Source of the DNA: Octopus sinensis
Lineage: Eukaryota
Assembly (NCBI RefSeq): GCF_006345805.1
Contig: NC_043001.1
Coordinates: 39,928,001 to 39,992,000 of the forward strand
DNA length: 64,000 bases
Reading direction: 5' to 3'
Both the position numbers and the translations under genes were made by a program. This document shows positions 211-63,785 of the stretch, piece after piece. The notes under the pieces were generated by a model. It saw only the letters and a program-made list of their open reading frames with translations, made no database searches and had not been told where the DNA came from. Each line of letters begins with the position of its first letter. The first letter of the stretch is position 1.

Positions 211-315
211 CTCTTATTTTGTGGAATTTATAAGCAACAAGCCCCAAAGTTATTAATAATAATACACTTCCTACAGTACAACCAATAATTGTTCCCAAAA
301 AGACTTCTGTAATTT
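211..315 (-). CDS. Exon J: transmembrane helix and stop-transfer ([35 protein letters not shown])
   Basis: atatcttttcag acceptor in phase 1; about 24 uncharged hydrophobic residues followed by KFHKIR. The donor is either G|GTTGGT (210) or TG|GTATGT (206). Too short to appear in the ORF track. Confidence 0.82.
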
Positions 316-1321: not shown

Positions 1322-1358
<37 letters not shown>

Positions 1359-1726
1359 CATCATTATCATTATTTATCATCATCATCATCATCATCGTTT
1401 AGCGTCCGCTTTCCATGCTGGCATGGGTTGGACGGTGCAACTGGGGTCTGGGAGGCCAGAAGGCTGCACCAGGCCCAGTCTGATCTGGCAGTGTTTCTAC
1501 GTTCCACTGGCACAGGTGCCAGATGAGGCTGGCAAATGGCCACGGTCGGATGGTGCTTTTTATGTGCCACCAGCACGGAGGTCAGGCGAGGCTGGCAAAC
1601 GGCCACGATCGGATGGTGCTTTTTACATGCCACCGGCACGGAAGCCAGTCAGAGCAGCACTGGCAACGGCCATGTTCGGATGGTTCTCTTATGTGCCACC
1701 AGCACTGGTATCACAGCTACGATTTC

Positions 1727-1807
<81 letters not shown>

Positions 1808-4800: not shown

Positions 4801-7800
4801 ATAACATCTTTACAAAGCCCATTGCTTTGAAAAAAAGCACTTATAATGTTGCTGCCCAATGATGAGCAAGTTTGATACATACATCTCAACTTTATTTGTT
4901 TACAGTATGTAACTATTTACCCATGCTTAAGCATTTCTACCCCAATCACAGTTCCCTCTAGAAATAATTTTGTATTAAAAATACTTATCTAGAGTTGGGA
5001 TATTTAAAAAATAAATAATATTTAAGTCCTCTGAACTACATTAAGCCAGTCAAAAAATATCAAGGAATATTGAAACCAAAGCCAACTTACATCCTTGCAA
5101 TTAGAGAAATATCTGTGCTGATTTTATAAATTTGTTGAGAAATGTTTCAGACTTTATTATGCATCATGATGTTTAGCTGATTCTTTTCAAATCACTCTCT
5201 TCTGTGATTGCACAGACTTAACTGCAATTATATAATGCAGCATTGAATAGTTCAGAATTATAAGCTGTGACTGTACATAAAAACTAATAGGATTGTCGGA
5301 TTACAATACTGATTTCAAACCCTCATAATGTTGTGATGATTTTTACTAGAGAAAGTGGGGTTACATGTTGAAATTTTGCATACATATAGTTGTTTGCTAG
5401 GGCCCTATTATCAGCACCTTCTAATCATTACAGTTATTGAATTTTAATACATGATTTCAGAACTATCTTTGAGAAAATTGGCTAAGGTCTTACAGCAGAG
5501 TTTGTTAAATAATTGTGACAAATATTTCACATCTAAAAGAAATATCTGTAGACTAAAGGCCTAAAAGTCAACATGATAGTTTCAATTTATTCAAGCCAGA
5601 CAACAGTTTAAATTTCTTCCATTCCACATAATATTATTTCCCTGTAAAAATCAGAGAATATTTTATAATTATAGGCTGGATTGGGGCTGGGGAACCCCTC
5701 CTCAGTGTTCAGATTTGAAATTACTCAATGACAGAGCCTACAAAAATCCATATGAAAAGCAAAATTAAATAGTAATTTAATATATATATATATATATATA
5801 TATAGTATACTTATATAGCATACAGATGTGCTCCGCAGATTCTTTACATCTCAACTCATACCCCATTCCATATTGAAAAGTTCCCTCAATTCTGCTCTAG
5901 ACTTTTGTTCTTTAACTAATGAAAACCACGGATGAATCATCATCTTCAAGCAATCTTCTCTAAAATACTTGTCTAGCTTGCAGTGGTATCTTGTATCAAG
6001 GTAGTTCTGATACAATTTTTGCAATTTTTCTTCCTCATGTTTGCTTTGTCATCATTTAACATCAATTCAAATATTCAGTTGTAAAATGTGTGTACAATTA
6101 ACAGATTTACTAAATATTCTTGAAGGAGCTATTTGGAATCTCATAAGCAAAATAACTAAATAGATTTAACTAATTTGGACCAGTAAAAGACCAAAAAGAA
6201 GTATTATTTCAGTATTTATATGTAACAGTTCACTCTTTCCATATTTCAGTAGAAAGTTTTATCACATTCATGTCATTTCCATTCTTATTTAGATATCTTT
6301 TGCTTAATAAGCAATTAAAAATAGTAGGTAACTTGAAAAACTGATTACTAAAGTTAAAGGAATGGTTTTTCAATAAAAGTTTGCCTCTAGCAATTTCCTA
6401 GTATATTTATTAAGGGACTATTACTTTTACATCTAAATGTAAATACTAAACAAAAAACAAAACTAATACTCTATAAAACATGAAACAATATTTTAAGTGA
6501 TTAAAGAATAATTACAAACAGGTAACAACTTACCTTCAGGTCTCAAGGTAAAAACAGTCACTTCTTTCCCTATGGGGTTTTCTACAGTTAAGATATATGT
6601 ACCAAAATCGTTATCTTTGATGTCTTCTATTGTTAAACTAGTACAGTTTCCTTTGAAAGGAAACTCACTTGATAAATAATCAGTTGTTGAATATTTGTCT
6701 GAGTCAATTGATTCCTCGTTTTTTTGCCATTTTACATCAGATTTTGGATGTGAATAAAAACACTGTTTGAAAATTACATTTTCTCCATTTGAAACATTTC
6801 TCTTAGGATCATTGAATACTGAACTGAAAATAGGTTTCACTGGTGAAAAAAAAAAAAAAGAAATTAAATATTTTCTGATAACAATAAACATTATAAATTT
6901 GAAATAGATTATTCTTAAGTTTGTTTGTTTTTTTTAAAAAGATAGACTAATAAAATGTAAACAATATAATTTTATAAGAGAAATTTACTTACACGCTTTC
7001 AGTCTGATCTGATTAGTAACTACAAACATCTGTACAATTTCAGCTCCAAATTAGAATCCCTATTTCCTAAACAAATTTCAGCTCATCATCTCATTCAAAT
7101 ACAACCTTTACAAAACAACCACAGTGCATTATCCCACAGGATCCTCTAACATTGTTTCACCACATTCCATACGCTCAAATCACACAACTCCCTGTATTTC
7201 TCTAGATTCTATTTCTATAGTAATAATTATGTAAAAGATCTGAATAACCTGTCAAATGCCAAACACAATTTTGATTCATATGTAACATCCTCTCAATTTC
7301 ACACACCACTAAATCATATAAATTAACAACCACTGAGTGCTTTACAAGAATTTGTTCTACTACCATACAAACAATAATATAACACTTGAAGAAAATTCCA
7401 TCACACATATGAGACTTCAATATCAAGATTGATAAAAGAGTAAAATATACATTTATACAATATAAGTTTTTATCTCTCTTAATTGTGATTACACAGATTC
7501 TTGCTAATTAGACAACCAGCAACTCAACTTGTCAGAGTCTTTTCCACCACTCTTTTACCAACCCAATAATATGGACATATGTATATTTGCTACCAATATT
7601 GAATCCAATTTAACTTTCTACACATAACAAACATTCAATCACTTCTTTTTTTTCAACTCTACTCATTACTGAAGAAGTCACCTCTATAGCTGTTAAGTGC
7701 AAAAAACCTTTGATCACTTAAAACCAGCAAGTCAACTTTACAGTTTCAAGTGATGTCTAAAAGCAGATAACAAAGCTTACTGATTATTTTTATAGATGTA

Positions 7801-10800
7801 GTCAAATATAAGCAGTTACTGTGTAACATAAAAAGTAAAGTTTTTCAAAGTATCTGATTTTATATAACCTGTACTAGATATCACTTCAGAGATTCTGAAA
7901 CTTATGTAATTTAGAATGTAATTACCACTATCTGATATTGTCCCAAGATATTGCCTTGAAATTATTATTTCAAATTGACTAATTCCTTACAAATTTTGAA
8001 ATTTCTCCTTCTCAGAGATCATTTAATGAAGGAATATGCAATTATGTGCATCATCTCCAATAAAGACTCCAATGCTACCAAGAAACAGCCTATTGGTTTC
8101 ACAGTCAATATTTCTAAGATTATACAAATAATGTTCATTCATTTCTTACATTACCTTAAATTTCAAGACCTTTGAAGTAGTTACCAATGAAAGATCTATA
8201 AAAGTAAATCCTCTGGAAACCAGCCTTTTATGTTACAAAGTGACCTTCATGAAAGTCTAAGCAGGATATAGACATTGCTTTGCCTTCAAAAACTGATAAA
8301 AATAACGTGATATAAATTTAGAACACCCATATTACTACACTTAGAAAATAAGTCTTCTATTTGCCCAAAAGTAAACTATCCCTAAATCTATATCTTTATA
8401 ATTTGGAATAAAAATAAATATTTTATATTTAGAATACATTCTTCATACAGATATACAATAGACAGCTGAAATAATAAGAAATAATAAATTACATAATTAA
8501 ACTCAAACTGGCAACTATTTCATGACATAAAATAAATGCTTGAAAAACAGTTTCAGTTTTTTTTGTTGTTGTTATTTTTTTTATTTGATGATATTGGATT
8601 TATTAAAACTATAATTTTTAAGTATTTACATATGAAACCATTCCAGAAAATTATAGTTAAAAATTATCAATATTTTTGATATACATAAAAAAGTAACAAA
8701 GTCCAACAATGTCATTAAATAGACCAAATAACTGAAAAATTCTACCATTTTAAAAATAATAATTAAAATTGTAAACATATTTTAACATTTTAATTGTGGC
8801 TTAGTAAAATACTTGCCTGGAATTTTGTAGCTTGATGATTTATTCACATGAAAATCTTTATTGCTTACATGACACTCCCATGTGCCAGAATTATTGAAAG
8901 AAGGGCTGTTTATAGATAATACATTTTTGTTATAAGTATTCTTTATGGCATTTCCCCATTTTTGCTTCAGTTTGTATTCATAAGTCGCTGGAATTCCATC
9001 AAATGCAGTGCAATTAATTATTGTAGCATTGTACATCCCCTCTGAAATATTAATGTTTACCTGAGGAGGATCTTAAAAAAAAAATTTTAATCAGAAAAGT
9101 TTCAATTTAAAATATACAATAAAAATTAATACAAAATTTCAGTTCCATACACATTTTAAAAATAAATTTATAAATAACATGGTTATAGTAATACATGAAT
9201 GTGTCTTGTAACACTTCAGATTCTTGTGACTGACATTGAATATTTTTTCTCATGTAGTATATCATAGAAAGACACTGTGAAGGAATATATTCATTCCAAA
9301 TTCATAATCATGAACAATTTGAGCTTGTTTTACAGTGATCTTATCTTGTTTTTGTACAACAACCCAGTTCTTCCAAAAAAACATCTAGAAATAATTTTTT
9401 CATTTTTTGTCTCAATCCTTCATTCTCATTTGAACCTTTAACTGACACAACAATATTTTTACTCAGAACACTTACGGGCAGAGCCCACAATTTGAATAGT
9501 TTCATCCCCTCTGTGCTGAATAAACTGAGTGAGCTTTTTAATACTTATATCTTTGCCTCTTTTGTTTAACCTCATAATGTTACGCTACATACGAAATCAC
9601 TGAAAAAATATAATCTTTTTCCCAAGTGCCACCTTTTTTGATTTCATTAATTTCAGCTTACCAACATATTTCCAAGATTTTTGGTTTATAATGGTAATGT
9701 TACTACCAGTGTCCAACTGCATTTTAACACTTGTATTTCTGATTTTCACCTTCACGAATTCCTCATCATTATATTACCAATTTCTTCCAATGACCTACTA
9801 TTTATTCTTTTTCCTTTGTTCTGATGTTTTATCATCTTCATTCTACTGTGTGTGTTTATATGTCATATATCTCCACAATAAAAGCACTCCACTGTTTTAA
9901 ATGGAAAATTTTTCCTCAAGTGTATACCCCCACATGCAAAACATGGGTTTATTTCATGATTTTTGTTGTTTTTAGAAAACACTTTATCTTTATTCTGACT
10001 ATTTCACACTTGCTTTACTTGGAAACAATCTTATGTTCAATTTCCTCTGTGCTGTGCCTTAATTTGACTATCCTTTCACATTCTTCTGACACTTGCTGTA
10101 GGGTTTCATCATGGTATTGTTCCAGCTTTGTGAGAACTCTAGTTCTAACTTCTGTGTCCTTTTCAATAGTAAATCCATGTGTAAAAAATCAAGCATCTTA
10201 ACATATCTAACATTAATTCGTCCAGCTTAAACTTCTCACATTTCCTGTTTATTCTACCAGCATATGTGATGTAGTCCTCATCATTGTTCTCCATGTTCAG
10301 ACACTTCCAACGTGTCATTGAATAATGCTCATTGAAAAAGCTCATTGAACAATGTGCTTTTTTCACTGAAAGTTTTAAACACTTATCTATTGTGTATATT
10401 TCCTATTTAGTATTGGGGAAGTTTCATTTATAAGGATGTACTCTCGAATTTGTCTGAGTGTTGGGTTTTTTGGGTGCTTGGTTAAGATGCAGATGTCAAG
10501 TTGACCCAAGTTGCATCCATGGTGGTCTTTGGCATGTTGGTAGAGTATGGAGGACTATTTTTTGTCTCATTTAGATGTTCATTTAGTCATTCCACAATGC
10601 TCCTAGATGTCTCCCCTATGTACGTCATGGTCATGTCTTTACAAGCATTTTCTATGCATCTTATGCTGTAAACTACATTTCGAGTTCTACAGTTAATGTC
10701 AGGGCTAATCCTACATGCCATGCAGTTATCAGGGTGAACACGTGGTATAAAACCGACAAATATAAAGGAGTGATGTTTGTAGAGGCCACAGCCCTTGGAG

Positions 10801-13800: not shown

Positions 13801-15742
13801 TTTTGGATGCTTGACAATAAGATTCACAGAGTGATAAGCAATGGTAATGGAATTAGGATATAAATAGGAATTGATGATGATGATAGTGCTGATGCTGGTA
13901 GTGGTGATGGTAGTGTGGCAAGGACATTAATGATGGAAGAGAAGGAGGAGGAGGAGGAGGAGGAGGGAAGGGGAGTACTAGTAATAATAGTAGTATATTC
14001 TTATCATACATTTCAACAGGATATTAATTTTTTTCCAAGATGTCAGATTTCCATGCTTTGTGCTCTTTGCATTGGCAACACAGAGAACATCACTGATATT
14101 TCTACGATTAAAAGTGAATGGGGAGTTTGAAGGAAAACTTTGATTTCTACATTCCAACCTCACTTCTGGGATAGGGTTTCCTTTTGCAGAACAGTTTACA
14201 ATGGATGCTTGATTCTCAATTAATGTCACATTCTCTGATGCAGTAATATCAGGTATATCTATAAATAAAAATAAATATATAAAATTTTTAAAACACAGAA
14301 AATGTTTGAGAAACTATGAAACATTTTGCTATCATTTATTATGAAATTTGTTTAATTCTTTAAATCCTAACACTGAGCAAGGTAGGCAGTTCCCAACACT
14401 GGCTGCCAGCATGAAAATCACTGAAAATTTTCTTAAAATTGACTTGCAGCTAAACAACAGCAATTATTAAACATTAAGTTATGATTACTATAAGCTATAA
14501 ATATTTTCTGTATATAGCTGCATCATCTGGTGAATGAGGCAATTAAAACTCACAAACACAAAGGTTTCTGAAAATGAAACATATTTTAAGTCATTTATAT
14601 ATCAAGACAGCATTACCTCTCACAACAGACATGTGCCACCACAGCTAGAATTTTTATTATATAATGCAAACAATACATGCAGTCCAACATATAATGAACA
14701 TGCTAGGTACTTTTGCTCTAGATATCACATATCCAGTTATAGACAGCCCCTAAGCATTCTATTAATAGTCTAAATGCAAAAGACCTACTGAAGTAAATTC
14801 AACTGGAGCTATTCAATAATAATGACAAGTACACTTATTAATGTATTCTTACATACACTATGTATGAAAAAATAGGATGGTCATAGAAGGAATACTTTCA
14901 GTCACAAATCTGCTTACTGGTGGTGGTGGTTATGGAAATGAAGTGAAGTGAAACATGGTGTGGGCTATTATATTACTTTCAGATTGTTTCCCATGGATTG
15001 GTATTAGTTATGGAATGGTCAATGCAACACAGAAGTGATAGTCTACAAAGCATTGTAGCGTCAACCAATGTCAATGGAGTAACACATGTACAGAAATATG
15101 TTGAGGCAACAAACAGCTTTTTGAAGGCCAGATCCTCTTTTAGAACCCAGGAAATTTTGAACCAGATATATAGTGATTAAAAGATGAAGCAATGCTATAA
15201 CATTCTAGGCCATACCATATCTGAATGGAAATAGAAAATGCAAGCCCTGCTTGATGGATAGGAGAATGAGACTAAAAAGTTCACACTATCTTAGCACATT
15301 CCTAAACTCAAACAAGCAGAATATTTGGATGCTGCCCTTAAGAACACAAATTCATTTTAGTCTGTAGAGTTGGCAGTGTTGCCTGGGTGTGGCAGTTGAC
15401 ATGAGGCTGATAGTAGCATTCTGACTAGATGTATTCTGTGACCAGTAATGTATTGCTCAACAATATAGAAATATATATTATATATTATATATATGTATAT
15501 ATGTATATACATATGGTATGAAATTCAACAAGTCACAGAGCACCTGGTCAATAAGCTATCCAGGGTTTCCTGACTGGAAAAATCAAATTTATTTTGTCAT
15601 TTCTCAAACCTGGTAATGTCAATATGGTAGGTTAACAATTACATATGAGCTAGTTTAAATGAGCACATGAGGTCATTTAATCACTTGAGAAATGGTGAAA
15701 TAAATTAACTATTCACATGGTTTTTGTGTGGTTTTATTAATA

Positions 15743-18700: not shown

Positions 18701-21700
18701 AGTTAGTTAGAGAAGGGCAGTAGAAGGATTGGTAGAGCTCAAACAAAATATCATGCAACTTTTTGTTACAATTTTCATTTAATTACCAGTTAAATATTGA
18801 GGTCAATTTAAAAACTACATACTGTCCCAAAATACCAGGCCTTCTACCAATATTAGAGATCTTTATTTAATCAGAGAAGGAGAAACAGTATCTATGATAC
18901 TTGCAGAACATCTCAGATCAGTTAAGTTGATGATGTTGATGTTTAGTTTGATTTCCTGCAAATTTATGATTATAGAGAAAATATCAAGAAGGAAGTTTTG
19001 CAGAGCTTTATTTCCAAAATAAAAAGAATGAATAAAGTAGTTAGTACAGGGCTTGGGAATAAAACCTAAGATAATGATAAAAGGACAGCTATATGCATCA
19101 GATAAGTCTGGTTGGAAGTGGTATGGTAGAAGGCGGCGAGCTGACAGAAACGTTAGCACGCCGGGCGAAATGCTTAGCGGTATTTCGTCTGCATTACGTT
19201 GTGAGTTCAAATTCCACCGAGGTCGACTTTGCCTTTCATCCTTTCGGGGTCGATAAATTAAGTACCAGTTACGCACTGGGGTCGATGTAATCGACTTAAT
19301 ACCTATGTCTGTCCTTGTTTGTCCCCTCTGTGTTTAGCCCCTAGTGGGTAATAAAGAAATAGGTATGGTAGAAGAGATGAAGAGAGGAAGGAGAAAAAAT
19401 TGAAGGTTCCAAGTTGTTATATGTTATAAAGTGAATCCTTTTAAGGGATGTTGTCTACAATGTGTGTATGTACATGTAGCAGCAGAACTATCCCAGATAT
19501 CAGAGTAGTATTCCAATGTGGGCTTTTTTCTAAGAGGATAATAAACTGATCAGAGCTGAAATATTTTCCAACTCGGGAGAATAAGTTTAGTCTTTGGAAT
19601 GTTGTATTGACAAAATTATATATGTATTTACAATAAAGTATCATTAGAGACTTAATAGTTTTCAGGGTTTTAGTTGTATGTTGTTCATGCACAGAAAAGG
19701 TACAGAGTTGCAAGACTATTCTTTAATATGTGTTGTGATTACATTTTAAAATGCTTATAAAGAATGCTATTTTGTCATGACCCCAATGGAGGATGATTTA
19801 AAAGCCTCTGCTAATGGACAAATCATAATTTTTTCATTATGTAACAAGGTTGTGTGGAAGGTTGAGTTGGAGTAAAAGGTAGTATAATCTGAATAGCAAT
19901 GTGTTGTTAGAAGAGACAGTGAATATAATGTTTATGTAAATAATGTACAGTATCAGTAAACAAAATGTGGCTCAGAGAAACATGTTGTGAGGAAGTAGAC
20001 TTATCAAAAACTTCCATTTCAAGTTATTTTGGAAAAACAAAGAAAATTAATCATGAAGAAATTTCATAATAAAAAGTAATCTTAAGAAAAATATAAAAAG
20101 ATCACAGTACTTTTCTGTATTGAATGCAAATAATAAATTATTTCATAGATGTATAATAAAATTTTAAGATTTCAACTTACATTCAACATTGATCCAATGC
20201 TTTTTATGTAATCTACATTTCTTATAGCATCTAGATGAAACATAACATGTGTAAACCTTGTTATTTAGTTTTCGATGAATTTGAGGAAGTGTGATGTTTT
20301 TTGAGGTACTGTTATTTGGATTCCACCTGTAATTATATTTTTCTGGATATCCATTTATTGTCTCACAATGCAAATTGCCTTCTTGGCCTTCAAGAAAGGG
20401 TTCATCACTCTGATTTTTATCTTTTCAGGTGAAGCTGAAAAAAGAAAATCAAATTACCTATATAAATAAAGGCACAGGTGTGGCTGTGTGGTAAGAAGCT
20501 TGCTTCCCAACCACATTGTTCAGGGTTCAGTCCCACTGCATAGCGCCTTGGGCAAGTGTCTTCTACTATAGCCCCAGACCGACCAAAGCCTTCTGAGTGG
20601 ATTTGGTAGACAGAAACTGAAAGAAGCCTGTTGTAAATATATATATGCATATGTTTGTGTGTCTGTGTTTGTCCCCCCACCATCACTTGACAACCAATGT
20701 TAGTGTGTTTACATCCCTATAACTTAGCGGTTCAGCAAAAGAGACCAATAGAAAAGTACTAGGCTTACAAGGTATAAGTCCTGGGGCTAATTTGTTTGAC
20801 TGAAACAAGTAAAATAAATAAAAGAAAAAATACTTTCATAAAGATATTTGTTTTTTCTAGTTATTGAATCAACAATTGAAATTTCCAGTTGCATTAAAGA
20901 TAAGGCGATGTATTCAAAATGGGAAAATTTTAAACAAGTTTTATGTTCTTTAAGAGTTGCAAAATGTTTAAACTGTTACAAAATAGGCAACACAAAATTT
21001 CAAATTATATCTAAAAATACATATTGATATAAGAAATCCTTGTATTTAAGATCTTCATCAGAGTACCATTCAGATTTTCAAAATATTGACAAAATCTGAT
21101 TTCAAAGTTGCAAGTTTCAGAAAAAAGAAGTTAGAATAGAAAGAAACATATTGAATATAGGTTTACATTAATTTCACATCTAATGTTACTAAAATGAAAC
21201 TAAATATCAAAAAATGTAATGAAATATTAGGTTTTTATGAATTGTGATTGTTGAATTTAATGCCAAGCTAAAAATAAAGGTGATTAATAAAAAAAAAATT
21301 AAATAAAATCTATCAATGCTAACTTTTCATAAAATTTTACCTACATTTCTCCAATTTCATAAGTTCATATACACTACACAGTCTGAACTTGGAGTTTTTT
21401 ACACACAAAATCCCAAAATAATATTCATTTATTACCATCATATCATGATTTTAAAATGCTGGATCCATAGAAAAAAATTGTTTTTTCAATAAAACAACTT
21501 ATGAGGAAAAGGCAAGCATACAAAGATTCATAGAAACTGGTTTTTCTTCAAAACCAAAATGTTGTCTTAAACTTCTATTAACAAACTAATAGAAATCTAA
21601 AAAAATCAACAGACAAATTACAACATTGTTTATGCCTAAATTCCTATGAATTTGCACTTGGATGATTTTCTTGAGTGCTAAAACTCAGGAAGATCATGAG

Positions 21701-23050: not shown

Positions 23051-26000
23051 GGATGGATGGATGGATGGATTAATACACACACTCACACACACACATACAC
23101 ACACACACATACAAAAGTCTGGTGCTGTGAGAACACATGGGAATGACATTTCCTTACTTTTACAAATATACTCAAATTTAAAATGATCTAATATAATGAT
23201 ATCATTCATTCGACATGTGCTGAAATATGCCAAAACAATTTAATTTTACACAAATATATGTTACTTTACATATAATTTCTGTGTTAATTCTATTTACTGA
23301 AACTTGCTAAAAAGCATATTTTGCTTTAAAATAGTATCTCCTTGTAGACACAATTGTCAGTAATCATACTGTTTCCACTTCTCTCAGCCAATATTTTTAC
23401 ATTAGCCTTCTTTCAAACTCTAGATAATGCAACATAGAGCTGACCATGTGAGAAGAATTGTGTCAGAAGATATATTCCAATTTGGTCAAAAGTCTGTCCC
23501 TATGCTTTGTTGCATGTCAAGGCAAAAGCTGGCTTGACAGGAAATTGTTTGCATGTAAATGTGAATAGTAATTCCATTTCTGGAGATACATGTGGTATTC
23601 TTGGGATTAGCAAAGTTGACCCTGCATAAGGACCAGAAGCAACCTCAGCCTCAATAACATGATCATGTAAACTGACAATGATGTAGTGTGTTCCATTGCA
23701 ATGTCCATTAGTAGCATCTAAATTTCTCAGAAGCATTATGCATCATTTTTTCTTCAGTTTGAGAATGTGAGGTGGAACTCCTGACGGTGTAAGTTTGTTG
23801 ATGAACTCGATTGGGTACAGAGTTTCATTATCAACTGTATCTGAGTTTCTGTATGTTTTTAGCTCACCAGGGATCCTGGTCAATAGAAAATCATTCACAA
23901 ATTGTGCTGCTTCATTTGTTGGAGTAACAATGGTTCGATTTGCAAGCCACATAGGGTTTGTGAAGTTATGTTTTTAGGTCAGCATATACAAAATCACAAA
24001 CGTCATTGGGTAGGTTGATTTTGAATTCACCTAGGCTTTGTTCAACAGAAATGTTACCGTTTCTTACATCAACAAGGTAATTAGCAAACTCTCTTTCATC
24101 AGAATAACTTTCTGTAAGCAGTCTTAGATTAGTTGTCTACTCTACTACTTCCATATGATTGCAAAGAAAAGATCTCTATAGTGTTGCTTCAACAATTTGT
24201 GACCTGACACCATTATTTTGAAGTAGAATATTCTACTCTTGAGATACCCTAACCAGTTGGTCATATGTAATGGAAACAGAATCATGTCTATGTCTCCATG
24301 CATATTCAGGCATCTGTTTCAGTCGCTTTGCCCTGGTTTCATCTAATTCAGTTGCCCATCTTTCTCCCTGCCATTGTGCCTTTGCTGCTAAATTTTCTTT
24401 TTCAGATGCATATCATTTATAAATGAAAGCTCATTAAAAACTATCTTGTTCAGCATGCTAGAAATAGCAGCGATCACATAGTTATTATTGTAAGGCTTAT
24501 AGTGTTCCAAGTAGCCATACCAACAAAATCACTTCTTCATTTAAAAAAAAAAATTATACCGATATATTAAAGAATTTTCATTTTCTCAAAAATATTCATT
24601 TAACAAACTTGGGAAACTGATAATATTCTTGAAATTGTGCTTCAAAGTTATACAGATATTTTGTGTAAACATGAAATGAAAAAGTCATATAAGTGAAAGC
24701 TCGTTAAAAACTGTCCTGTTTAGCATGAAGAAATAGCAGCAATCACATAGTTATTATTGTAAGGCTTATAGCATTCCAAGTAGCCATACCAACAAAATCA
24801 CTTCTTCATTTAAAAAAAGAAAAATTATACCAATATATTAAAGAATTTTCATTTTCTCAAAAATATTTGTTTAACAAACTCCAGAAACTGATAATTTTCT
24901 TGAAATCATATCAAACTTGTACAGCTATTTTGTGTAATAGCATGCATCCATTCAGCACAAAATCCCTTAATAATTATACTGGTATATTAAAAAATTTTCA
25001 TTTTATCAAAAATATTCATTTAACAAACTCTGGAAACAGATAATGTTCTTGAAATTGTGTTTCGTATCAAAATTATATAACTATTATTAAATTATCATTA
25101 ATGAAAATAGAGGCAAGTGAGAATGAGAGACTGTTGCAAATACAAATGTAAAAATGTTGCCTGCAACGAATTAATAGTGTTTATTATTAAAATCTACTCT
25201 GCATTGAATGCATTGAATGCAATAAATATTTAAATTCATGAAGAATTTGACACAGTGAATGCAATGATTATTTAAATTTGAAAAATTTGGAGTTAAAAAA
25301 ATTCAATAAACTTCAGAAATCGAAATTATAGGTAATCTCTAAGAATATGAATTTATAAAAATATTTCCAGACGGTTAAGCTTTTAATATTGCTTTCTTTT
25401 AGTACTTTTAGTAATTGTTACATACCTAATTAATAAGCAGTTTTCTCCATTATAGTATAGATTGTTTCAGAAAAATAAAACAACTTTAACCCTGACCAGC
25501 CCATTTTGCTATCACAGAATATTGCTTATTGTTCACTTCACTCAGCAAAACCAACATCCAATCCAACATATACAAAAGACTATAATCTTACATTTTCATA
25601 ATTTTCTTGAGAGAAAAAAACAAAAACTGAAGATAAAAAGTTTTCACTTATACTCACAGCAAACAGTTATATTCTTTTCATGAGATACATTTGCAGCAAT
25701 ATGAGAACCCAGACACTTGACTATTTGATGAGATTTAGAGGGAATTACTCTAAGTTCAACATCTTCTTTACTAGTATTTGATATATTTTTATACATCAGG
25801 GTCACACTTGCTGGTGGATTGCCACCTTTCCAACTACAGTGAAATTTCATTGGTGTACCAGCACATACTTTTGCCCCAGGAACATTTAAAATGATCTTTT
25901 TCACTGGGGTATCTATGAATTTTAGAAAATAAATAGTTAAAAGAAAAAGTTATTCCAAGCAGAATAAAAAAAAAAAAAGAAAAAGAAAAGGCAGAATTAT

Positions 26001-34113: not shown

Positions 34114-37100
34114 CCAAAAAAGCAAAACTTTAACCATCTTTAATCATGACTGAGGATACTGAAGCACCTATACTGCCAAAAATAAGAGTTAAAAACTCTT
34201 ACCACTATATGAATTGCACAATATATATACACTGACAAGGGAGATAACTGCCCCATGACTGATAGGGGAAACTAGTCTGGTCCAGTGATCTGTAGAGTCA
34301 GTCATGGGGCAGTTATCTGCCATAGAGGAAGAATAATGTGCTAATGTTTATTGGTATATGCTTGAAAGCATTTGGTGGATGGTTAGAATGGGTGTAGATG
34401 TGCAATGTGACACTATTTCTTTTATTTAGCCAATTTAAGCTAATTACAGAAATGACCACATATTTTGAGACTAATTCATAATTGGTCAGTTGTATAGTAT
34501 TACAACAAGGAACCCAATAAAAATAGCTCTCTTCAAAATTGTTAAAGTTGTATAATCTTCTCATTGTTGTGGTAAATATAAATCTAGAAATGTACATATC
34601 TTTCACATAAATACTTTGAACAAATCTACATTTTGTGTTTTATAGAGATAAAAAAAAGAGCTTACATTTTATGGGCATATCGAGTTTCATTGAACAGTAA
34701 ACAAATTCACTTTTACCCGGAAAATATGCAACACACTGTAATTCCTTAAAATTCTTATTAAGAGTTAATGTCAGTTTTGATGATAAAGTGATCAGCTCTC
34801 CTGATTTGCTTGGCTTGTTTGAAATATACTTTGTAACATTTATTTGTGTCCCATTTTTCCATGTTATCAGCCAAAAGACTGAAAATTCAGGGTTGGTGTC
34901 TTTAATAAGGCATTCATAACTTTTATTCTGATTTTCCACTGGAACTGTGTCAGAAATAGCCTTGACTGTGACTGATTTTGGTAAAACTGAAATAGAAGAA
35001 TTGCTCAAAATTATATCAATAAATGAATGAATGAATATGTTTGTTTTAATATTTGTGTGTGAGTGTGTGAAAGAGAGAGAGAGAGAGAGTATGCATGTAT
35101 TTATATTACGTCTGTTACATGTTTCCTTACTTAACTGTGCGTTGACTAAGAATATATTTATATTTTTGGTAGCTATGGAGACTGAGGTTACATGAATATT
35201 GTTCATAATTTCAGTATTATCTTTATTGATGTCAATCAGTAGGCATTGCTTAATTTTCGTTGACTGATCTAACTTAGCTCAGCATCAGCTATATAGACCA
35301 AATAGAATGCCATGAATCAGGTCATCCCATAAGTTCCATCCAAATTTTGAATAAAGAAAACAAGTGATCAAATATTATATTTAATTGAAATTTAATCATC
35401 AATGTATACTTTTCCTGATTATCTATGACTTCCTTCCATCTATTTACAAGCTTTTTAATCCCATCAATGTAAAACTCTTTTGGTTTCAAAGTGAAGAACT
35501 CTGAAATGTCCTGGCTTGCGAAAGGTATGTGCCCCAAATGATTCTGTAAACTACGAAATAAATGGTAGTCTGAAGGAGCAAGGTCAGGAGAATAAAGTGA
35601 ATGAGAAATTTTTTCCCAACCAAGCTTTTCGATCTTCTGTGATGTGATCTTTGCTGAATGGGGTCGTGCATTGTCCTGATGAAACATTACTCCTTTTCGA
35701 TTCACTAAAGTGGGTCTTTTTTTCTTCAAAGCTTGGTTCAAATGCTCTAATTGTTATCTGTAGACTTGAGCATTGATTGTTGCATTAGGTGCAAAGTGAA
35801 TTACTCCTTTACAATCCCATCAGATAGAGAGAAGAACCTTTTTTCCATGAAGTTCCCTTCTAGTTTGTAGTTGAGCTTTTTCCCTTTTACCAAGCCACTG
35901 TTTACGATGTTTAACATTTTAATAGAAAATCCATTTTTCATCCCCAGTCACAAGTCTATCCAAAAAGGGTGAAATGAGTTCATGAGAATGGAGAGAGGAG
36001 CAGATGTCAACTTGGGATTTGCATTTGCTTTTAAACAATTCATGAGGCACCCATTTTCCAAGTTTAGGAACCTTTTCAAGTTGTTGAAGATGACGCTGAA
36101 CAGTTGTATGGTTTGAACTAAGCTTTGTGGTCAATTCTTCAACTGATAATGCTACAAGGAGCTTATCATCAAACTCAACTAGACGTCCTGTTTGATCTTC
36201 ATCTTCAAGCCTGAGATCTTCACTTCTGAATTTTGCAAACCATCTTCTGCAAGTTCTTTCATTCAAGCATTCTTACGCATAAACTGAGTGCATGTTTGGA
36301 GTCACTTCGGCTGCAGAGTTTCATTTTTTGTACTCATAAAGCATTATGTGCCTTAAATGCTCTTTGGATACTTCCATGTTAGAAAGGGTTTTAATCAAAG
36401 AAATTTTAATTCTATTATTCTGTAAAATAATATTTAATTAGTTTAAATGTACACAAATGCATAAAAATAATTTTAAATTCCATTAGCCAGTCTGCCACCT
36501 TATAACTTATCAGTCAGGAGACTCCGCTAGCCAAATAGACTTCATCCTCACCAGACAACGGGATGCAGGGTTGCTCTTGAATACAAAGACCCTCCCGGGT
36601 GAAGAATGTATCCCTCAGCATAGACTATCATCAGTGACTTTAAGCTTGAGGCCAGAAGGACTCCAAGAAACAAACCAATCCAGAAAAGAAGGATTTGGAG
36701 GCTAAAGAACCCTTCGCATGGTCAGAAATTTAGGGACATACTCATCAAGAAATTTGATGAGAGGGAGGAGGAGCTTCAGACGTCAGACATAGAAGGTAGC
36801 TGGGAATTCCTACGGGACAGCTTGTTGAGTGCCACAGACCAAGTCTGTGGATGGTGCAAAGTCCCTTCCAGACCTAGAATTACGTGGTGGTGAAATAGTG
36901 CAGTAGATAAAGCCATCTCTGAAAAGAGACGGGCCTGGAAAGCCTGGAAGGATGGGGCAGCAGGGAACTGTACCAGATAGCCAAAAGGGAGGCTGGGCGG
37001 CAGGTATACATTGCCAAAGATGTAGCAGAAAAGAAGAAGTTTGCCAATGTCCAGCGTCGCGAGGATCAAAGAGCTGAAGTATTTCGGATTGCCAGACAGT

Positions 37101-49100: not shown

Positions 49101-49158
49101 CTGCTATTTCTACTAAGTTCAGTATGTGGCAAAGTAATTTATTTTACTAAGCCCTAAT

Positions 49159-49197
<39 letters not shown>

Positions 49198-49432
49198 TCT
49201 TTATTAGCCACAAGGGGCTAAACATAGAGGGGATAAATAAGGACAGACAAACGAATTAAGTCGATTACATCGACCCCAGTGTGTAACTGGTACTTAATTT
49301 ATCGACCCCGAAAGGAGGAAAGGCAAAGTCGACCTCGGCGGAATTTGAACTCAGAACGTAACGACAGATGAAATACGGCTACGCATTTCGCCCGGCATGC
49401 TAACGTTTCTGCCAATCTCACCGTTGTTCATC

Positions 49433-49482
<50 letters not shown>

Positions 49483-57333: not shown

Positions 57334-58768
57334 TATATATACATATATATATACATATATATGTGTGTGTGTGTGTGTGTGTCCATATACATATTTATAC
57401 TTATGGAGGGGGTACATCTTTGTGCTTGTTTCTCACCACTTTACAACCAGTGTAGTTTTGCTTACCTCCCAATGTCTTGGGACTTTGGCAAAAAGATACC
57501 AATACACAAAATATCAAACTTTAATAATAAGTTCTGAGGTCCATCTAACTGACTAAGCACTTTAAGGTCCAGTCCAATGGCTGAAATAATTAAAGCAATA
57601 ATAGCATAAAATCACACACTTAACTTTGCAAAAATAATTACTTACCAAATACTCTAATATTGAACAAGCTTGTGTGGAAATTAGTCTTGCAAACAATGCT
57701 CATGTTGTCATCATCTAATCTAATGCTGGTTATACTCAATGTACAGATTTTGCTTTGGCAATGAGTTTCTTGACGGCTACCAAAATATCTAGAATAATTT
57801 TGGTTGAATAATCCAATGTATTTCGCAATAACTAATCCATTTCCAGTAAACCAGATTACTCCAGTATCATCAGTTTTACATCTCAATGTAAATTTTTTAT
57901 CCTTTATGGCATTTGGTGTTTCAGAACTTGGATAAATATTCCCTTTCTCATCTAAAACACAAATTATATCAAAGTAAATAAATCATTAGTCACCAAATGA
58001 CAGAACATCTATATATATAAAACTGAGAATGTGTGTGTGTCTGTCTGTCTGTCTGTGTGAATCCCTAAAACTTAAGAACTACACAACCAATTTCATTCAA
58101 ATTTTACACATGCCTTACTTAGGGTCCAGGGAGTGTCATGGGGAAAAAAATTTCTAACTTCTTGCCTAGGGCGAGCCCAGAGCAATATCATATCTTCTCC
58201 ACTATGAATCCCTTAAACTTGAGAACTACACAACCAATTTCATTCAAATTTTACACATGCCTTACTTAGGGTCCATGTAGTGTCATGGGCAAAAAAATTT
58301 CTAACTTCTTGCCTATCATATCTTCTCCACTATTTCAGTATTACGTGTTAAAAGTGAAACAAAACATCTCTCTATTGTAATGTCAGATACTTTCACTTTA
58401 ATACTGAAACTATTAAAGTCAAACTATTATATAAGAAGGATGAACCATTAACAGTGGACATCCATTTTTCTAGAAGATCCACTATGGTCTTATATGCTAC
58501 ACCACTGGTTTTCAATTCATATTAATCAAATTAATATTCAATTTCTCACCCTTATTATCTTAAATTTAAATTTAAACCCAGGATCACGTGTTTTGAAACA
58601 AAGTTTGTTACCACACAGCCACACTTGCACCTATGTATGTGTGTGTGTGTGTATGTGTATAGCTGTATATGTATACATGTATATGTGTAGATGTACATAT
58701 ATATAGATGTACATGTCATATATACACATATATATATTCACATATATACATGCATACATATATACACC

Positions 58769-58802
<34 letters not shown>

Positions 58803-61800: not shown

Positions 61801-61808
61801 TTATAATG

Positions 61809-61872
<64 letters not shown>

Positions 61873-62650
61873 CACATGCCTGCACATGTATGTAAACATG
61901 CACACACACACGTACGTGACCACGCATATTCAAGAATGATATTTCTGATGACAGTCAGAAATCCAATCAATACACACTCTAAAGATGGGGTTAATTATTA
62001 ACAAAAATGTTTGTTTTAATAATAATAACTTCTGATATTTTTATAACTTAATAATTTTGTTAATGTTATCAATAACATGCTAACAGCTACATCTCTCTCC
62101 TGCAAATCAAACATATGATCTTAGCCATAATAAAGCTATCTCAATAATACTGAAACAATATATGGAAGAAACTTATAAACATTAAAATGTCATTGCTAGT
62201 ATTTGTTTGTTACAACTAATAGCTTTTGAGAATTAACTGGAGCTTAAAGCTAGATTTTACAGAAATATATTTTGTTCATGATTATGATATCTCAATATTA
62301 ACAGGAAAATATATACAAATGATTTTTATTTGGTACTTACTCGATAATGGTATTATTAGAAATTTATGACTCTTTTCAGTGCTCTGACAATCAATTCTTA
62401 TATCATGGCTTGAAGTAACAGTGAAGTTTAAGATGTTGGTTTTGTCAGAATTCACACTTGCTTGTATGTCCGAATTTTTAAGAAACACCCATTTAGGGGC
62501 GCTAATTTTGTCAACTCCCACTTGCCACACTTCAATTTCTTGCTTTTCAGTGAAACATTCTAAAGTTGATTGGTGATTTTTCTTCATAAATTTAATAGTA
62601 GCATCATCTAATTGAAGACAAACTGAAGGAAAGAAAAATATAAAACATAT

Positions 62651-62737
<87 letters not shown>

Positions 62738-63785
62738 TAGACAGATAGATAGACAGAGAAAGAGAGAGAGAGAGAGAGAGTTATGGCAGGTTCATAGGGT
62801 TACCTGGGGCTTTGCGTCTATAAAGCACTTATCTTTTCATACATCTCATCAGACCCTAATGGCCAATGGCTTATAATCTCTCTTCAAAGTGGAGCAAGAA
62901 GAGGCCTCATGGTTAGTTTTTGAATACACAAAGAAGAAAGGTAAGTGCAAGGAATTGTCTCCATTATACCACTATCCAGAATCCACCCAGTTAGTTTGCA
63001 GGTCTCAGGATTTCAGTAAAATTCATCTGAAGTGTGAACAGGGTTCATTTACATCTGTCCTGAATTTAAAATGTTCCACAATTCAAGGGAGTTCTTTAAT
63101 ATCCTCAGCCATTCTGCTATGCACAGCTTGCAACATTTGCTCCCATTCATGTAGGGCCTGGTTTTTCTAGGATCTTCCATATGATTACAAGTGGAGTCCT
63201 TTTGTTCTTTAGGTGACACACGTGGCAGGCCAAGGACATAGCATAATGTCTTTCCAGGATCCTAAACAAGTATTTGTGGTTGGAGAGGAACTGCTTGAAG
63301 GTGTTTCTGGAACATCCAATATATTTTTGAATGCTACTATTGGCGTTGTTGCTTCTGTTGATGTTGACACTGCTACTTCCATTATTGTTGGTGCTGGTGT
63401 TGGCACTGTTGTTGTTGTTATTGTTGTTGGTGTCTCCGTTGGTGCTGCTATAATCATCATCGTTGTTGGAACCGTTGTTGTCATTGTTATTATTGTTATC
63501 ATTATTAGCATTATCATTAGTGATGGTGCTGCTGCTATTTTTGCAATAGTTGCTGCTGTTGCTATAATTTAATAATAGCAAAGGTGTTGCTGCTATTCCT
63601 GCAACTTCCATATCTGTTGGAAAAGCTGCTGCTATTAGGATCAGATATAATTAAGTTCTACAATCTATCAATAGATATAAATTTGTGATAGCTAAGAGTT
63701 CGAAGAAAAAATGTTTATATTATTACTTACCACATAGGCATTGTACAGTTAAAAAGTGTTTCCAATATAACAGCTTGAATTCCAT
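211..63785 (-). CDS. Spliced gene for a type I membrane Ig-superfamily protein (signal peptide + 8 Ig + TM; nephrin/SYG-2/CEACAM-like architecture), 3' end outside window
   Basis: Ten exons with AG acceptors and GT/GC donors, all phase 1. Internal exon lengths are multiples of 3 (282, 306, 321, 255, 240, 249, 255, 306; the 240 uses a weak acceptor). Each internal exon encodes one Ig-like domain with spaced Cys/Trp. A hydrophobic N-terminal exon and a TM exon bracket them. Confidence 0.85.
1380..1720 (-). mobile_element. GAT-tailed RTE 3' module with internal ~60-bp repeats
   Basis: (CAT)n-cgtttagcgtccgctttccatgctggcatgggttggacgg is the reverse complement of the 3' end of the RTE at 39100-39310. 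Confidence 0.8.
1990..2870 (-). mobile_element. Decayed CR1/L2-group LINE RT C-terminal fragment
   Basis: YINDI...KYADDITLY; [14 protein letters not shown]; [15 protein letters not shown]. Confidence 0.8.
3600..3920 (+). mobile_element. Decayed 3' end of a HERO-like (RLE) non-LTR retrotransposon
   Basis: Translation [15 protein letters not shown] followed by gatcaaccatgactgggttaactgggtga...aaagacctgaaac, which resembles the HERO C-terminus and 3'UTR as I recall them. Confidence 0.5.
6534..6839 (-). CDS. Exon I: Ig domain 8 (I-set-like, lacks the F-strand Cys)
   Basis: ttttcaccag acceptor, AAG|GTAAGT donor, 306 nt; VKPIF...[16 protein letters not shown]...[24 protein letters not shown]. Confidence 0.9.
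8817..9071 (-). CDS. Exon H: Ig domain 7 (GC donor)
   Basis: ttttttttaag acceptor, CCAG|GCAAGT donor, 255 nt; YPPQVNI...[15 protein letters not shown]...LSI...[12 protein letters not shown]. Confidence 0.87.
10130..11964 (-). mobile_element. Gypsy (K02A2.6/Mag-like) remnant: LTR 11764-11964, PBS-like site, gag split by a Penelope insertion
   Basis: TG..CA-bounded ~200 bp followed by gtggcaatgag; gag motifs [19 protein letters not shown] and RWKCLNM...[14 protein letters not shown]. Confidence 0.65.
10385..11230 (+). mobile_element. Penelope-like element 3' fragment with an inverted partial copy
   Basis: [33 protein letters not shown]...P.LN; 10385-10620 is the reverse complement of about 10932-11170. 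Confidence 0.75.
14010..14258 (-). CDS. Exon G: Ig domain 6
   Basis: tttatttatag acceptor, T|GTATGA donor, 249 nt; [16 protein letters not shown]...[13 protein letters not shown]...VLCVAN. Confidence 0.9.
15800..18690 (+). mobile_element. Decayed RTE LINE (RT C-half, long pyrimidine-rich 3'UTR, GAT tail)
   Basis: [10 protein letters not shown]...ELIYADD...[12 protein letters not shown]; the end matches the RTE 3' module. Confidence 0.8.
19132..19361 (+). mobile_element. Young tRNA-derived SINE (family 1) with a 12-bp TSD
   Basis: ggcggcgagctgacagaa A-box-like head, gagttcaaattcc B-box-like site, aataaagaaata tail; TSD ggtatggtagaa at 19120-19131 and 19362-19373. Confidence 0.88.
20181..20420 (-). 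CDS. Exon F: Ig domain 5 (in frame only from a weak AAG acceptor at 20421; the strong acceptor at 20435 is 1 nt out of frame)
   Basis: T|GTAAGT donor at 20180; [28 protein letters not shown]...[19 protein letters not shown]. Confidence 0.8.
20471..20800 (+). mobile_element. tRNA-derived SINE (family 2)
   Basis: ggtgtggctgtgtggtaagaagcttgcttcccaacc...ggttcagtccc head; copies at 27585, 32740 and 58806. Confidence 0.8.
21375..22530 (-). mobile_element. Internally deleted Chapaev3-like (CMC) DNA transposon
   Basis: [27 protein letters not shown] and [14 protein letters not shown]...[22 protein letters not shown]; CAC-like ends. Confidence 0.6.
22990..23075. repeat. (GATA)n/(GGAT)n microsatellite; another (GATA)n at 62650-62750. 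Many (TA)n, (CA)n and (ATT)n tracts occur throughout the window.
   Basis: Directly visible. Confidence 0.95.
23316..24410 (-). mobile_element. Helitron Rep-helicase C-terminal fragment
   Basis: PIF1-type motifs [64 protein letters not shown]. Confidence 0.9.
24418..25080. repeat. Tandem ~270-bp direct repeat (2 copies plus a partial third)
   Basis: gaaagctc.ttaaaaact...gtagccataccaacaaaatcacttcttcatttaaaaaaa recurs near 24424 and 24694, with a partial copy near 24980. Confidence 0.8.
25658..25912 (-). CDS. Exon E: Ig domain 4
   Basis: aattcatag acceptor, T|GTGAGT donor, 255 nt; YTPVKKIIL...[16 protein letters not shown]...VKC...NITVC. Confidence 0.88.
26130..27540. mobile_element. Cluster of old and young SINE family-1-related copies in mixed orientation, including a young + copy at 26671-26900
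   Basis: Repeated aataataatcatttcta...aaggcacaaggcctgaaat heads and gaaaggatgaaaggcaaagt.gacct blocks. Confidence 0.75.
27585..27960 (+). mobile_element. SINE family 2 copy
   Basis: Colinear with 20471-20800. Confidence 0.8.
27985..28915 (-). mobile_element. RTE 3' module and RT C-terminal fragment
   Basis: (CAT)n tail; reverse strand reads [27 protein letters not shown]. Confidence 0.75.
29200..29750 (+). mobile_element. Penelope-like RT C-terminal fragment
   Basis: VEFLDTKV...[20 protein letters not shown]...[12 protein letters not shown]. Confidence 0.75.
29960..32735 (+). mobile_element. Decayed RTE LINE interrupted by a Penelope fragment (31088-31390)
   Basis: Colinear with 36700-39300; many stops and frameshifts. 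Confidence 0.8.
33270..33420 (+). mobile_element. Penelope-type terminal repeat fragment with a degenerate hammerhead-like motif
   Basis: ctttctgtataagagcataggctcgaaacatgaaag: GAGC/GCTC stem followed by GAAAC. Confidence 0.45.
34666..34986 (-). CDS. Exon D: Ig domain 3 (C2-like)
   Basis: ttctatttcag acceptor, T|GTAAGC donor, 321 nt; VLPKSVTV...YEC...NPEFSVFW...LSSKLTLTL...LQCVAY. Confidence 0.9.
36487..39310 (+). mobile_element. Young, 5'-truncated RTE LINE (endonuclease C-terminus, RT with internal PHD finger, 3'UTR, GAT tail)
   Basis: ORF 37325-38656 with [27 protein letters not shown] and YADD. About 2 frameshifts and 3 stops; possible ATTAG TSD. Confidence 0.95.
38974..39040 (+). repeat. 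18-bp tandem repeat (aaagtaccccggatcccc, about 3.5 copies) at the RTE ORF end / 3'UTR
   Basis: Directly visible. Confidence 0.85.
40890..42910 (-). mobile_element. R4/Dong-clade RLE non-LTR retrotransposon remnants (two partial copies)
   Basis: [54 protein letters not shown]...HDVVAK. Confidence 0.85.
43117..43248 (-). mobile_element. Non-autonomous Helitron/Helentron-type element
   Basis: The reverse strand ends ggcggaggtctgcactctctgagtgcttttCTAG|T: a short hairpin followed by CTAG. Confidence 0.6.
43430..44480 (+). mobile_element. Old RTE LINE RT C-terminal fragment
   Basis: [31 protein letters not shown]. Confidence 0.7.
44690..47960 (+). mobile_element. Ty3/Gypsy LTR retrotransposon, 5'-truncated (gag CCHC, PR, RT, RNase H, IN, 3' LTR)
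   Basis: [14 protein letters not shown]; LVDTG; [11 protein letters not shown] and YIDD; CDAS..AELDA..TDS; HHCC zinc finger with D-D-E. PR-RT-RH-IN order. About one frameshift and two stops. Confidence 0.95.
47652..47960 (+). repeat. 3' LTR of the Gypsy element
   Basis: Follows the ORF end and a purine-rich agggtggtg tract; TG...CA ends; GC content drops after 47960. Confidence 0.7.
48463..49166. repeat. Unclassified 704-bp element bounded by identical 141-bp direct repeats (48463-48603 and 49026-49166)
   Basis: Base-by-base comparison shows identical arms; the interior is CpG-rich; flanked by CA/TA microsatellites. Confidence 0.8.
49195..49424 (-). mobile_element. SINE family 1 copy
   Basis: Reverse complement of 19132-19361. 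Confidence 0.85.
50930..53030 (-). mobile_element. Decayed RTE LINE (endonuclease through RT/PHD)
   Basis: [40 protein letters not shown]; colinear with 36490-38300. Confidence 0.85.
53725..54980 (-). mobile_element. RTE 3' end with a ~62-bp minisatellite expansion (53897-54360)
   Basis: ORF 54517-55062 contains [22 protein letters not shown]...EKTRQD; six close and two diverged tandem units. Confidence 0.85.
56230..56720 (+). mobile_element. Penelope-like GIY-YIG endonuclease remnant
   Basis: CDC...[10 protein letters not shown]...YCIGS...[13 protein letters not shown]. Confidence 0.7.
57646..57951 (-). CDS. Exon C: Ig domain 2 (V-like)
   Basis: gtgttttag acceptor, G|GTAAGT donor, 306 nt; FTLRC..DTGVIWF...[19 protein letters not shown]...FNIRVF. 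Confidence 0.87.
58008..58330 (+). mobile_element. Non-autonomous Helitron 5' end with an internal ~150-bp duplication
   Basis: A|TCTATATATATAAAA...(GTCT)n start; gaatccc..aaactt.agaactacacaaccaatttc repeated near 58056 and 58206. Confidence 0.6.
58806..59110 (+). mobile_element. SINE family 2 copy (right arm of a fold-back)
   Basis: Colinear with 20471-20800. Confidence 0.75.
60640..61300 (-). mobile_element. Tc1/mariner (maT/DD37D-like) transposase remnant
   Basis: [33 protein letters not shown]; [14 protein letters not shown]. Confidence 0.7.
62341..62622 (-). CDS. Exon B: Ig domain 1
   Basis: tttccttcag acceptor, A|GTAAGT donor, 282 nt; [12 protein letters not shown]...STLEC...EVWQV...RIDCQS...IIPLS. 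Confidence 0.78.
62800..63330 (-). mobile_element. Penelope-like GIY-YIG C-terminal remnant
   Basis: [22 protein letters not shown]...SLACHV..LK....IIWKIL; CKLCIAE. Confidence 0.7.
63731..63785 (-). CDS. Exon A: start codon and putative signal peptide ([18 protein letters not shown])
   Basis: ATG in ataATGG context with an in-frame TAG just upstream. Donor G|GTAAGT at 63730 is phase 1 and joins the next exon as V-CLQ. An acceptor-like ctttattcatag 3 nt before the ATG implies a further upstream exon. Confidence 0.6.

Follow-up and report, generated by a model that had tools for sequence, protein, structure and literature searches.

Do the immunoglobulin (Ig)-like exons scattered along one stretch of the Octopus sinensis genome belong to a single receptor gene, and if they do, what kind of receptor is it? 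The stretch in question, called the window throughout, is the 64,000 nucleotides (nt) at CM016863.1:39,928,001-39,992,000 (GCA_006345805.1), with the gene on the minus strand at ~39.93-39.99 Mb. The window is AT-rich (29-52% GC) and contains many retroelement open reading frames (ORFs), which marks it as genomic DNA of an animal. We conclude that it very probably carries coding exons 1-10 of one O. sinensis gene, and we have high confidence in both this structure and the family assignment. As judged from sequence comparison, the gene is a member of a cephalopod-restricted (Octopus, Argonauta, Sepia), multi-copy and uncharacterised family of type I receptors of the immunoglobulin superfamily (IgSF).

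The initial annotation, made from the letters alone, had proposed a signal exon, eight single-domain Ig exons and a transmembrane (TM) exon at 211-315. All of these were found on the minus strand, in that order, at or immediately beside the places proposed, as ten coding exons with splice consensus: signal peptide (SP), Ig1 to Ig8 and TM (Table 1). The Ig exons and the TM exon are all phase 1-1 and a multiple of 3 nt long, with the sole exception of Ig5 when it is read from its homologous acceptor; one domain per exon is the classic layout of the Ig superfamily. Searching the window by tblastn with octopus homologues gave matches at exactly the ten exon sites, collinear and nowhere else, with E values of 1e-9 to 1e-62 for the nine longer exons and ~1e-6 to 1e-7 for the 18-residue signal exon. 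Such collinearity is far beyond chance. The Ig1 acceptor used in annotated proteins (62622) lies 15 nt upstream of the most obvious one (62607) and adds the residues VCLQL. The intron after Ig7 begins with a GC donor (CCAG/GCAAGT, 8811-8816, minus strand), which O. vulgaris retains and which the RefSeq model also employs. A crude C..W..C regular-expression scan for Ig exons was abandoned, as it overlooked the majority of them.

That the exons encode one type I membrane protein, as had been claimed, was borne out by the junctions, all nine of which are present in at least one annotated octopus protein. Those joining SP, Ig1, Ig2 and Ig3 are in O. sinensis P0002 (LOC115212116), which is identical to the window there. 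The Ig3/4, Ig4/5 and Ig5/6 junctions are in O. vulgaris P0164 (CAI9722591.1), a single model comprising SP, Ig1-5, part of Ig6, Ig8, TM and the same tail. Junction Ig6/7 is in O. bimaculoides P0001 (A0A0L8HS72), which has the full SP, eight Ig domains, TM and tail and is 87% identical over the whole model. Finally, Ig7/Ig8/TM/tail is in O. sinensis P0024 (XP_036359229.1, LOC115212119), identical over Ig7, Ig8 and TM and followed by a 222-amino-acid (aa) tail. At the O. vulgaris locus (L003), all ten exons occur in the same order with 98.6-100% nucleotide identity.

The O. sinensis RefSeq annotation splits this gene, placing SP and Ig1-3 in LOC115212116 and Ig7 to the tail in LOC115212119; the window's Ig4-6 were in none of the O. 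sinensis RefSeq models found. The description of the gene as hidden thus holds for the split O. sinensis copy and its unannotated Ig4-6, but not for the orthologues A0A0L8HS72 and CAI9722591.1, which are already single genes, nor for the two O. sinensis ends, which are annotated. Isoform X1 of LOC115212119 opens with a transposon-derived coding exon that, by comparison with the orthologues, the ancestral gene lacked. Junk or chimeric segments occur in further models of the family (P0005, P0009, P0010), whose annotation is poor in all three Octopus genomes.

Table 1. Coding exons and other features located in the window (window positions; P numbers denote the annotated proteins named in the text)
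Feature	Positions	Strand	Support or remark
Exon 1: ATG and signal peptide (18 residues + 1 nt), 55 nt, ends in phase 1, donor GTAAGT	63731..63785	-	Identical to residues 1-18 of O. sinensis P0002 and O. vulgaris P0164
Exon 2: end of signal peptide (VCLQL) and Ig1, 282 nt, phase 1-1	62341..62622	-	C41-W51-C97 pattern
Exon 3: Ig2, 306 nt, phase 1-1	57646..57951	-	100% nucleotide identity in O. vulgaris
Exon 4: Ig3, 321 nt, phase 1-1	34666..34986	-	Pfam C2-set_2 at 21.7 bits (cut-off 21)
Exon 5: Ig4, 255 nt, phase 1-1	25658..25912	-	Sub-threshold Pfam Ig_2; used by O. vulgaris P0164
Exon 6: Ig5, 254 nt from homologous acceptor (ttttttcag/CTTCAC)	20181..20434 (alternative start 20420)	-	
Single-base deletion in Ig5: ATC-AGAGT in the window, ATCAAGAGT in O. 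vulgaris	20410..20412	-	DNA alignments and protein comparison with P0001 and P0164
Premature TAA when the homologous Ig5 acceptor is used	20355..20357	-	
Exon 7: Ig6, 249 nt, phase 1-1	14010..14258	-	Sub-threshold Pfam I-set; 100% identical in O. vulgaris
Transposon-derived first coding exon of LOC115212119 isoform X1	9648..9722	-	Absent from orthologue proteins
Exon 8: Ig7, 255 nt, phase 1-1, followed by GC-AG intron	8817..9071	-	Junction used by XP_036359229.1 (P0024)
Exon 9: Ig8, 306 nt, phase 1-1, I-set type	6534..6839	-	Pfam I-set 42.9 bits, E 5e-11; 100% match to P0024
Exon 10: juxtamembrane segment, TM helix and basic stop-transfer KFHKIR, 105 nt, phase 1-1	211..315	-	Matches P0024

One exon departs from this regular picture. 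In all family members Ig5 starts with x-P-P/E-x-x-I-x-I-K-x-DEPFLEG, read from a strong cag acceptor. From that acceptor (20434) the exon is 254 nt long in the window, as against 255 nt in O. vulgaris, whose locus is 99% identical. The DNA alignment places the difference at one absent A, the window reading ...AAAATC-AGAGTGATG and O. vulgaris ...AAAATCAAGAGTGATG, and the same pattern was obtained with a paralogue locus. An in-frame Ig5 is reached only through a weaker AAAAG acceptor (start 20420), at the cost of the conserved domain start. The ectodomain had been described as complete: all eight Ig exons are indeed present, but with the 1-nt deletion in Ig5 the in-frame version depends on this weak acceptor. 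The damage is confined to Ig5, and no other exon is disabled. Aligned introns of O. sinensis and O. vulgaris contain ~1.6 indels per kb. The deletion may be either an assembly error or a real young allele. The shortage of one base in Ig5 is probably the reason why RefSeq has the gene in two pieces, the chimeric LOC115212116 and the 3' fragment LOC115212119.

The orthologue-guided reconstruction gives a product of ~1,020 aa, a type I membrane glycoprotein open to heavy N-glycosylation, with 26 sequons in its ectodomain. The protein belongs to the Ig superfamily: Pfam matches over the whole model reached 67 bits (Ig_3) and 59.9 bits (I-set). Domain by domain, Ig8 was above threshold, Ig3 at threshold (C2-set_2) and Ig4-7 gave sub-threshold Ig matches, while Pfam found nothing in Ig1 and Ig2, in agreement with the early impression of very divergent domains. 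The Ig fold is a two-sheet beta-sandwich with cysteines in strands B and F and a tryptophan in the core; the expected cysteine pair is present in most of the Ig domains, Ig8 having YIL where YxC is usual, and the motifs that had been quoted for domains 7 and 8 are in the sequence. AlphaFold2 (AF2) applied to Ig1-2 with a 10-sequence alignment returned two eight-stranded beta domains, with a pLDDT of ~65-80 for the Ig1 beta-sandwich. Foldseek searches of the PDB with this Ig1-2 model retrieved tandem Ig structures only (antibody fragments, NCAM2, titin, PTP-delta Ig1-2), generic matches among which there was no specific relative. The full-length model, which was not used for the fold search, is all-beta apart from an N-terminal helix (residues 2-19) and a C-terminal helix (in the orthologue). 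The hydrophobic N-terminus, kept in all paralogues and predicted by AF2 as a helix, is a candidate signal peptide. At the other end, the TM exon specifies 24 hydrophobic residues, after which come KFHKIR and the cytoplasmic tail, as in a single-pass protein. No FN3 exon was found by tblastn in the window between Ig8 and TM, and the orthologue proteins pass directly from Ig8 to the TM segment; the absence of FN3 before the membrane, remarked on at the outset, extends to the model and to every octopod member.

The gene does not end with the window. It runs ~47 kb past window position 1, where 12 mini-exons (42-81 nt) lie 8.4-46.9 kb beyond, at 28138-66701 of the extended locus sequence L002 (window x corresponds to L002 position 19723 - x, by exact matching). 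The first eleven measure 42-63 nt, have AG/GT flanks and carry one tyrosine motif each; the twelfth, of 81 nt, is terminal, has no tyrosine and bears the stop codon. Two types of mini-exon recur, encoding D.D.AY.N[IVL].KKP[DE] and VVEDEHAEDSEPKYVCMKQP. The latter is encoded by three identical 60-nt copies, which points to recent exon duplication. Altogether the tail has 12 tyrosines in its 222 aa (four YxN, four YxxM and several YxEV), with 23% Asp+Glu. The tail was tested for the canonical motifs of immunoreceptors, namely ITIM as (S/I/V/L)xYxx(I/V/L), ITSM as TxYxx(V/I) and ITAM as paired YxxL/I, and contains none of them, although some paralogues and the Argonauta protein each have isolated motifs of ITIM- or ITSM-like form. 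Among the paralogues mini-exon number varies, and tails have 5 to 29 tyrosines and lengths of 122 to 423 aa.

We sought the relatives of this protein in several ways. Word-indexed searches returned Octopus proteins only, plus one weak copepod match. Orthologue segments served as queries in a representative-protein search, and HMMER with a family profile, run against 1.84 billion representatives, gave 511 proteins at E<=1e-3. At the top of these stood Octopus paralogues, a full-length protein of Argonauta hians, cuttlefish and scallop proteins, IgSF proteins of unionids and Pecten, and hemicentin-like giants. Homology collinear over SP, Ig1-8 and TM, together with a Tyr-motif tail, is common to A0A0L8HS72, CAI9722591.1, LOC115212119, LOC115212116, LOC115212114, LOC115212249 and LOC115212246 of Octopus and to Argonauta hians GAB1598814.1. 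Identity to the window gene is 95-99% for O. vulgaris (aligned blocks), 87% for O. bimaculoides, 57-70% for the paralogues and 43% for Argonauta. The expectation of a lineage-restricted, multi-copy family was borne out, close relatives occurring only in Octopus, Argonauta and Sepia; the proteome search for paralogues that had been suggested gave at least six loci in each octopus species and no 1:1 orthology to a conserved FN3-bearing gene. One paralogue locus (L001) lies 75 Mb away on the same chromosome, so the family is not one tandem array, and most paralogue gene ranges exceed 100 kb. A shorter sub-family of ~395-aa Ig proteins (O. bimaculoides LOC106876419, O. sinensis LOC118763527), encoded on the same chromosome, matches Ig1-Ig3 of the family profile.

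Divergence within the family is concentrated in the first domain. Mean identity between paralogues is 45% for Ig1 against 72-78% for Ig2-8, and the orthologues of O. sinensis and O. bimaculoides are likewise less alike in Ig1 (78%) than in Ig2-8 (85-94%); by invariant columns, Ig4 is the most conserved domain among paralogues. From one paralogue to another Ig1 differs strongly (25-43% identity), and the window copy stands apart by its 1-nt Ig5 deletion. A fast-diverging membrane-distal domain commonly marks diversifying recognition of partners.

Beyond the octopods the similarity is partial. The cuttlefish protein CAE1168733.1 (Acanthosepion pharaonis) and the transcript-derived P0031 (1214 aa, from public-run assemblies, in a cluster that also holds a cuttlefish fragment) are collinear over Ig4-8 (32% identity) or Ig5-8 (30% identity), with common landmarks in the YPP domain starts, GNP.P, FYS.P...W and Y.L.V.N. 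CAE1168733.1 also has a Tyr-motif tail, and a cuttlefish form made up of Ig4-8, TM and Tyr tail is without FN3; P0031 differs by extra Ig4/5-like repeats, an FN3 before the TM and a tail with zero tyrosines. In scallops, proteins named 'synaptogenesis protein syg-2-like' or 'nephrin-like' (Ylistrum XP_060083674.1, Argopecten XP_069109542.1) are collinear over ~500 aa at ~24% identity; they have the landmarks of Ig6-8, a TM and a tail that is short and rich in Tyr. They differ by an FN3 between the last Ig and the TM, a longer last Ig and other N-terminal domains. A mafft alignment of the Ig6-8 module shows landmarks common to proteins from octopus through scallop. FN3 is present in the decapod-type transcript and the scallop relatives and absent in all octopod members. 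We place the octopus family as a branch, without FN3, of a broader group of molluscan IgSF proteins. The initial annotation had likened domains 7 and 8 to mollusc proteins automatically named nephrin- or hemicentin-like, and this agrees with the collinearity of Ig6-7-8 with the scallop proteins and with weaker 'hemicentin-like' matches.

Two other accounts of the locus would dispense with an intact single gene. The O. sinensis copy could have been disabled recently, the Ig5 deletion being real, full-length transcripts being degraded and the only product being the Ig7-Ig8-TM-tail protein of LOC115212119, made from a transposon-derived start. The 254-nt length of Ig5 from its homologous acceptor and the TAA at 20357-20355 speak for this, as do the want of a RefSeq model through Ig4-6 and the two isoforms that begin at or before Ig7. 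Yet the remaining exons are all intact, carry no further disabling change and match O. vulgaris at 98.6-100% identity, and use of the in-frame acceptor 14 nt downstream could restore the frame in part. The missing base is moreover a single A in a long-read-based assembly, where, given the intronic indel rate, a faulty assembly and a real change are equally likely. We therefore regard recent disablement as unlikely, while treating it as the foremost competitor. Much less probable is that separate transcripts are made as RefSeq has them, SP and Ig1-3 being spliced to paralogue Ig4-8 hundreds of kb downstream, with the window's Ig4-6 left as unused relics. P0002 does read this way, since it is identical to the window over SP and Ig1-3 and then switches to Ig4-8, TM and tail of another, distant paralogue (61-88% identity per exon). 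However, a model of ~780 kb in which seven well-formed exons close at hand are passed over has the look of a chimera built under protein guidance. In the orthologues of O. bimaculoides and O. vulgaris it is the local exons that are joined, and O. sinensis and O. vulgaris show 100% conservation of Ig4 and Ig6 together with their flanks.

A further account accepts the single gene and disputes its identity, taking it for the octopus orthologue of nephrin/SYG-2/Sns after loss of FN3. Nephrin has a multi-Ig ectodomain, a single TM and tail tyrosines that recruit SH2 adaptors. Eight Ig domains, a TM and a Tyr-rich tail are found here too, and one O. vulgaris fragment, like the scallop relatives, is automatically named 'syg-2-like' or 'nephrin-like'. 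Against this, the FN3 that stands between Ig array and TM in nephrin, SYG-2 and Sns is absent from the model and from every octopod member; with at least six paralogous loci per octopus species, orthology is not 1:1; and SYG-2 chains were not among PDB matches at E<=1e-3 for either the protein or the family profile. The scallop 'syg-2-like' protein itself matches DSCAM, neurofascin and Robo better than, or at least as well as, SYG-2, and is only ~24% identical to the octopus gene. We thus regard the nephrin/SYG-2 label as a weak automatic name, find no support for membership of that family and consider such orthology highly improbable. The likeness to nephrin/SYG-2/Sns-Hibris would be one of working logic only, drawn by analogy with established knowledge of nephrin, and even there the tail motifs differ (YDxV in nephrin, YxN and YxxM in octopus), the octopus proteins lacking FN3 and being multi-copy. 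Hemicentin was rejected, since the gene has only eight Ig domains and a TM, as against a secreted giant with vWA, >40 Ig, EGF and fibulin-type modules, and hemicentin-like proteins appeared as low-ranking multi-stretch matches.

What might a single eight-Ig receptor of this family do? Its overall role would be to mediate cell recognition or adhesion while serving as a phosphotyrosine scaffold. Because Ig1 varies much more from paralogue to paralogue than Ig2-8 do, the membrane-distal Ig1, or Ig1-2, may set ligand or partner specificity. Engagement could then lead to phosphorylation of the acidic tail, which would dock SH2 adaptors of the Grb2/Drk and PI3K-p85 type. The SH2 specificities by which pYxN binds Grb2 and pYxxM binds PI3K p85 are what suggests a docking tail. 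A recognition/adhesion receptor signalling through phosphotyrosine docking seems to us the most likely function, although we advance the signalling mechanism tentatively, at slightly less than even odds. A more far-reaching idea, which we consider speculative and rather improbable, is that the octopod-expanded eight-Ig family forms a cephalopod-specific recognition system (immune or neuronal) in which Ig1 sets the partner and the number of tail exons tunes signalling strength. If true, this system would parallel the independent protocadherin expansion in octopus. If the family turned out to be expressed only in haemocytes, brain or suckers, lineage-specific recognition would be a reasonable function to propose for it.

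Several points weigh against the reading as a whole. Ig5 as assembled is frame-broken from its homologous acceptor. Co-splicing of all ten exons in O. sinensis is read from orthologue models; fragments obtained from public-run assemblies were single genomic exons or a different 3-Ig protein, with no transcript of this gene among them. The AF2 models are of low confidence (pLDDT 43.5 at full length with a 9-sequence alignment, 60 for Ig1-2), SH2 docking is deduced from general knowledge of motif specificity, and a literature search for the family and the LOC identifiers brought no mention of them in the library searched. With these set against the evidence above, a single gene of a cephalopod-restricted family that encodes a signalling receptor is the best explanation, to which we assign a probability of about 0.7. 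The gene does not represent a novel type of system: it stems from a lineage-specific expansion within the IgSF, of a common type, and its orthologues are already public as 'uncharacterized protein'. What the analysis contributes is the single-gene model, the 1-nt Ig5 defect, the variable Ig1, the exon-modular tyrosine tail and the FN3-less molluscan placement. The model corrects a fragmented and chimeric O. sinensis reference annotation and flags a single-base problem in one exon.

The introns contain a variety of repeats, and an Rfam scan of the window found no RNA family. Two related Asn/Thr/Ser-rich ORFs on the minus strand, at 63150-63650 in intron 1 and 59791-60647 in intron 2, have the end motif KYI.C...F...NHK..FR.LER.YA in common; they had no Pfam match, are absent from orthologue proteins and are probably copies of an unclassified repeat. 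The Ig4-Ig5 intron holds a fragment of a Pif1-type helicase 2B domain (E 9e-8; 23503-23973, minus strand), probably a Helitron remnant, and Mariner/Mos1-like transposase remnants (weak HTH_48 match) lie directly upstream of the Ig3 exon at 35322-36266 (minus strand). A non-LTR element at 36,500-39,100 (ORF 37325-38656, plus strand) encodes RVT_1 (E 2.5e-30) and a PHD-like finger and is missing from the aligned O. vulgaris intron. The Ig2-Ig3 intron also contains a GC-rich (52%) retroelement of the long terminal repeat (LTR) type at 42,400-49,700 (ORFs 44842-47633, plus strand), with aspartyl protease, reverse transcriptase-like/RNase H-like and integrase-like ORFs. Nothing corresponds to this LTR block at the orthologous site in O. 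vulgaris, and it thus looks like a recent O. sinensis insertion. The LTR and non-LTR elements account for an intron length of 22.7 kb here as against ~11.6 kb in O. vulgaris.

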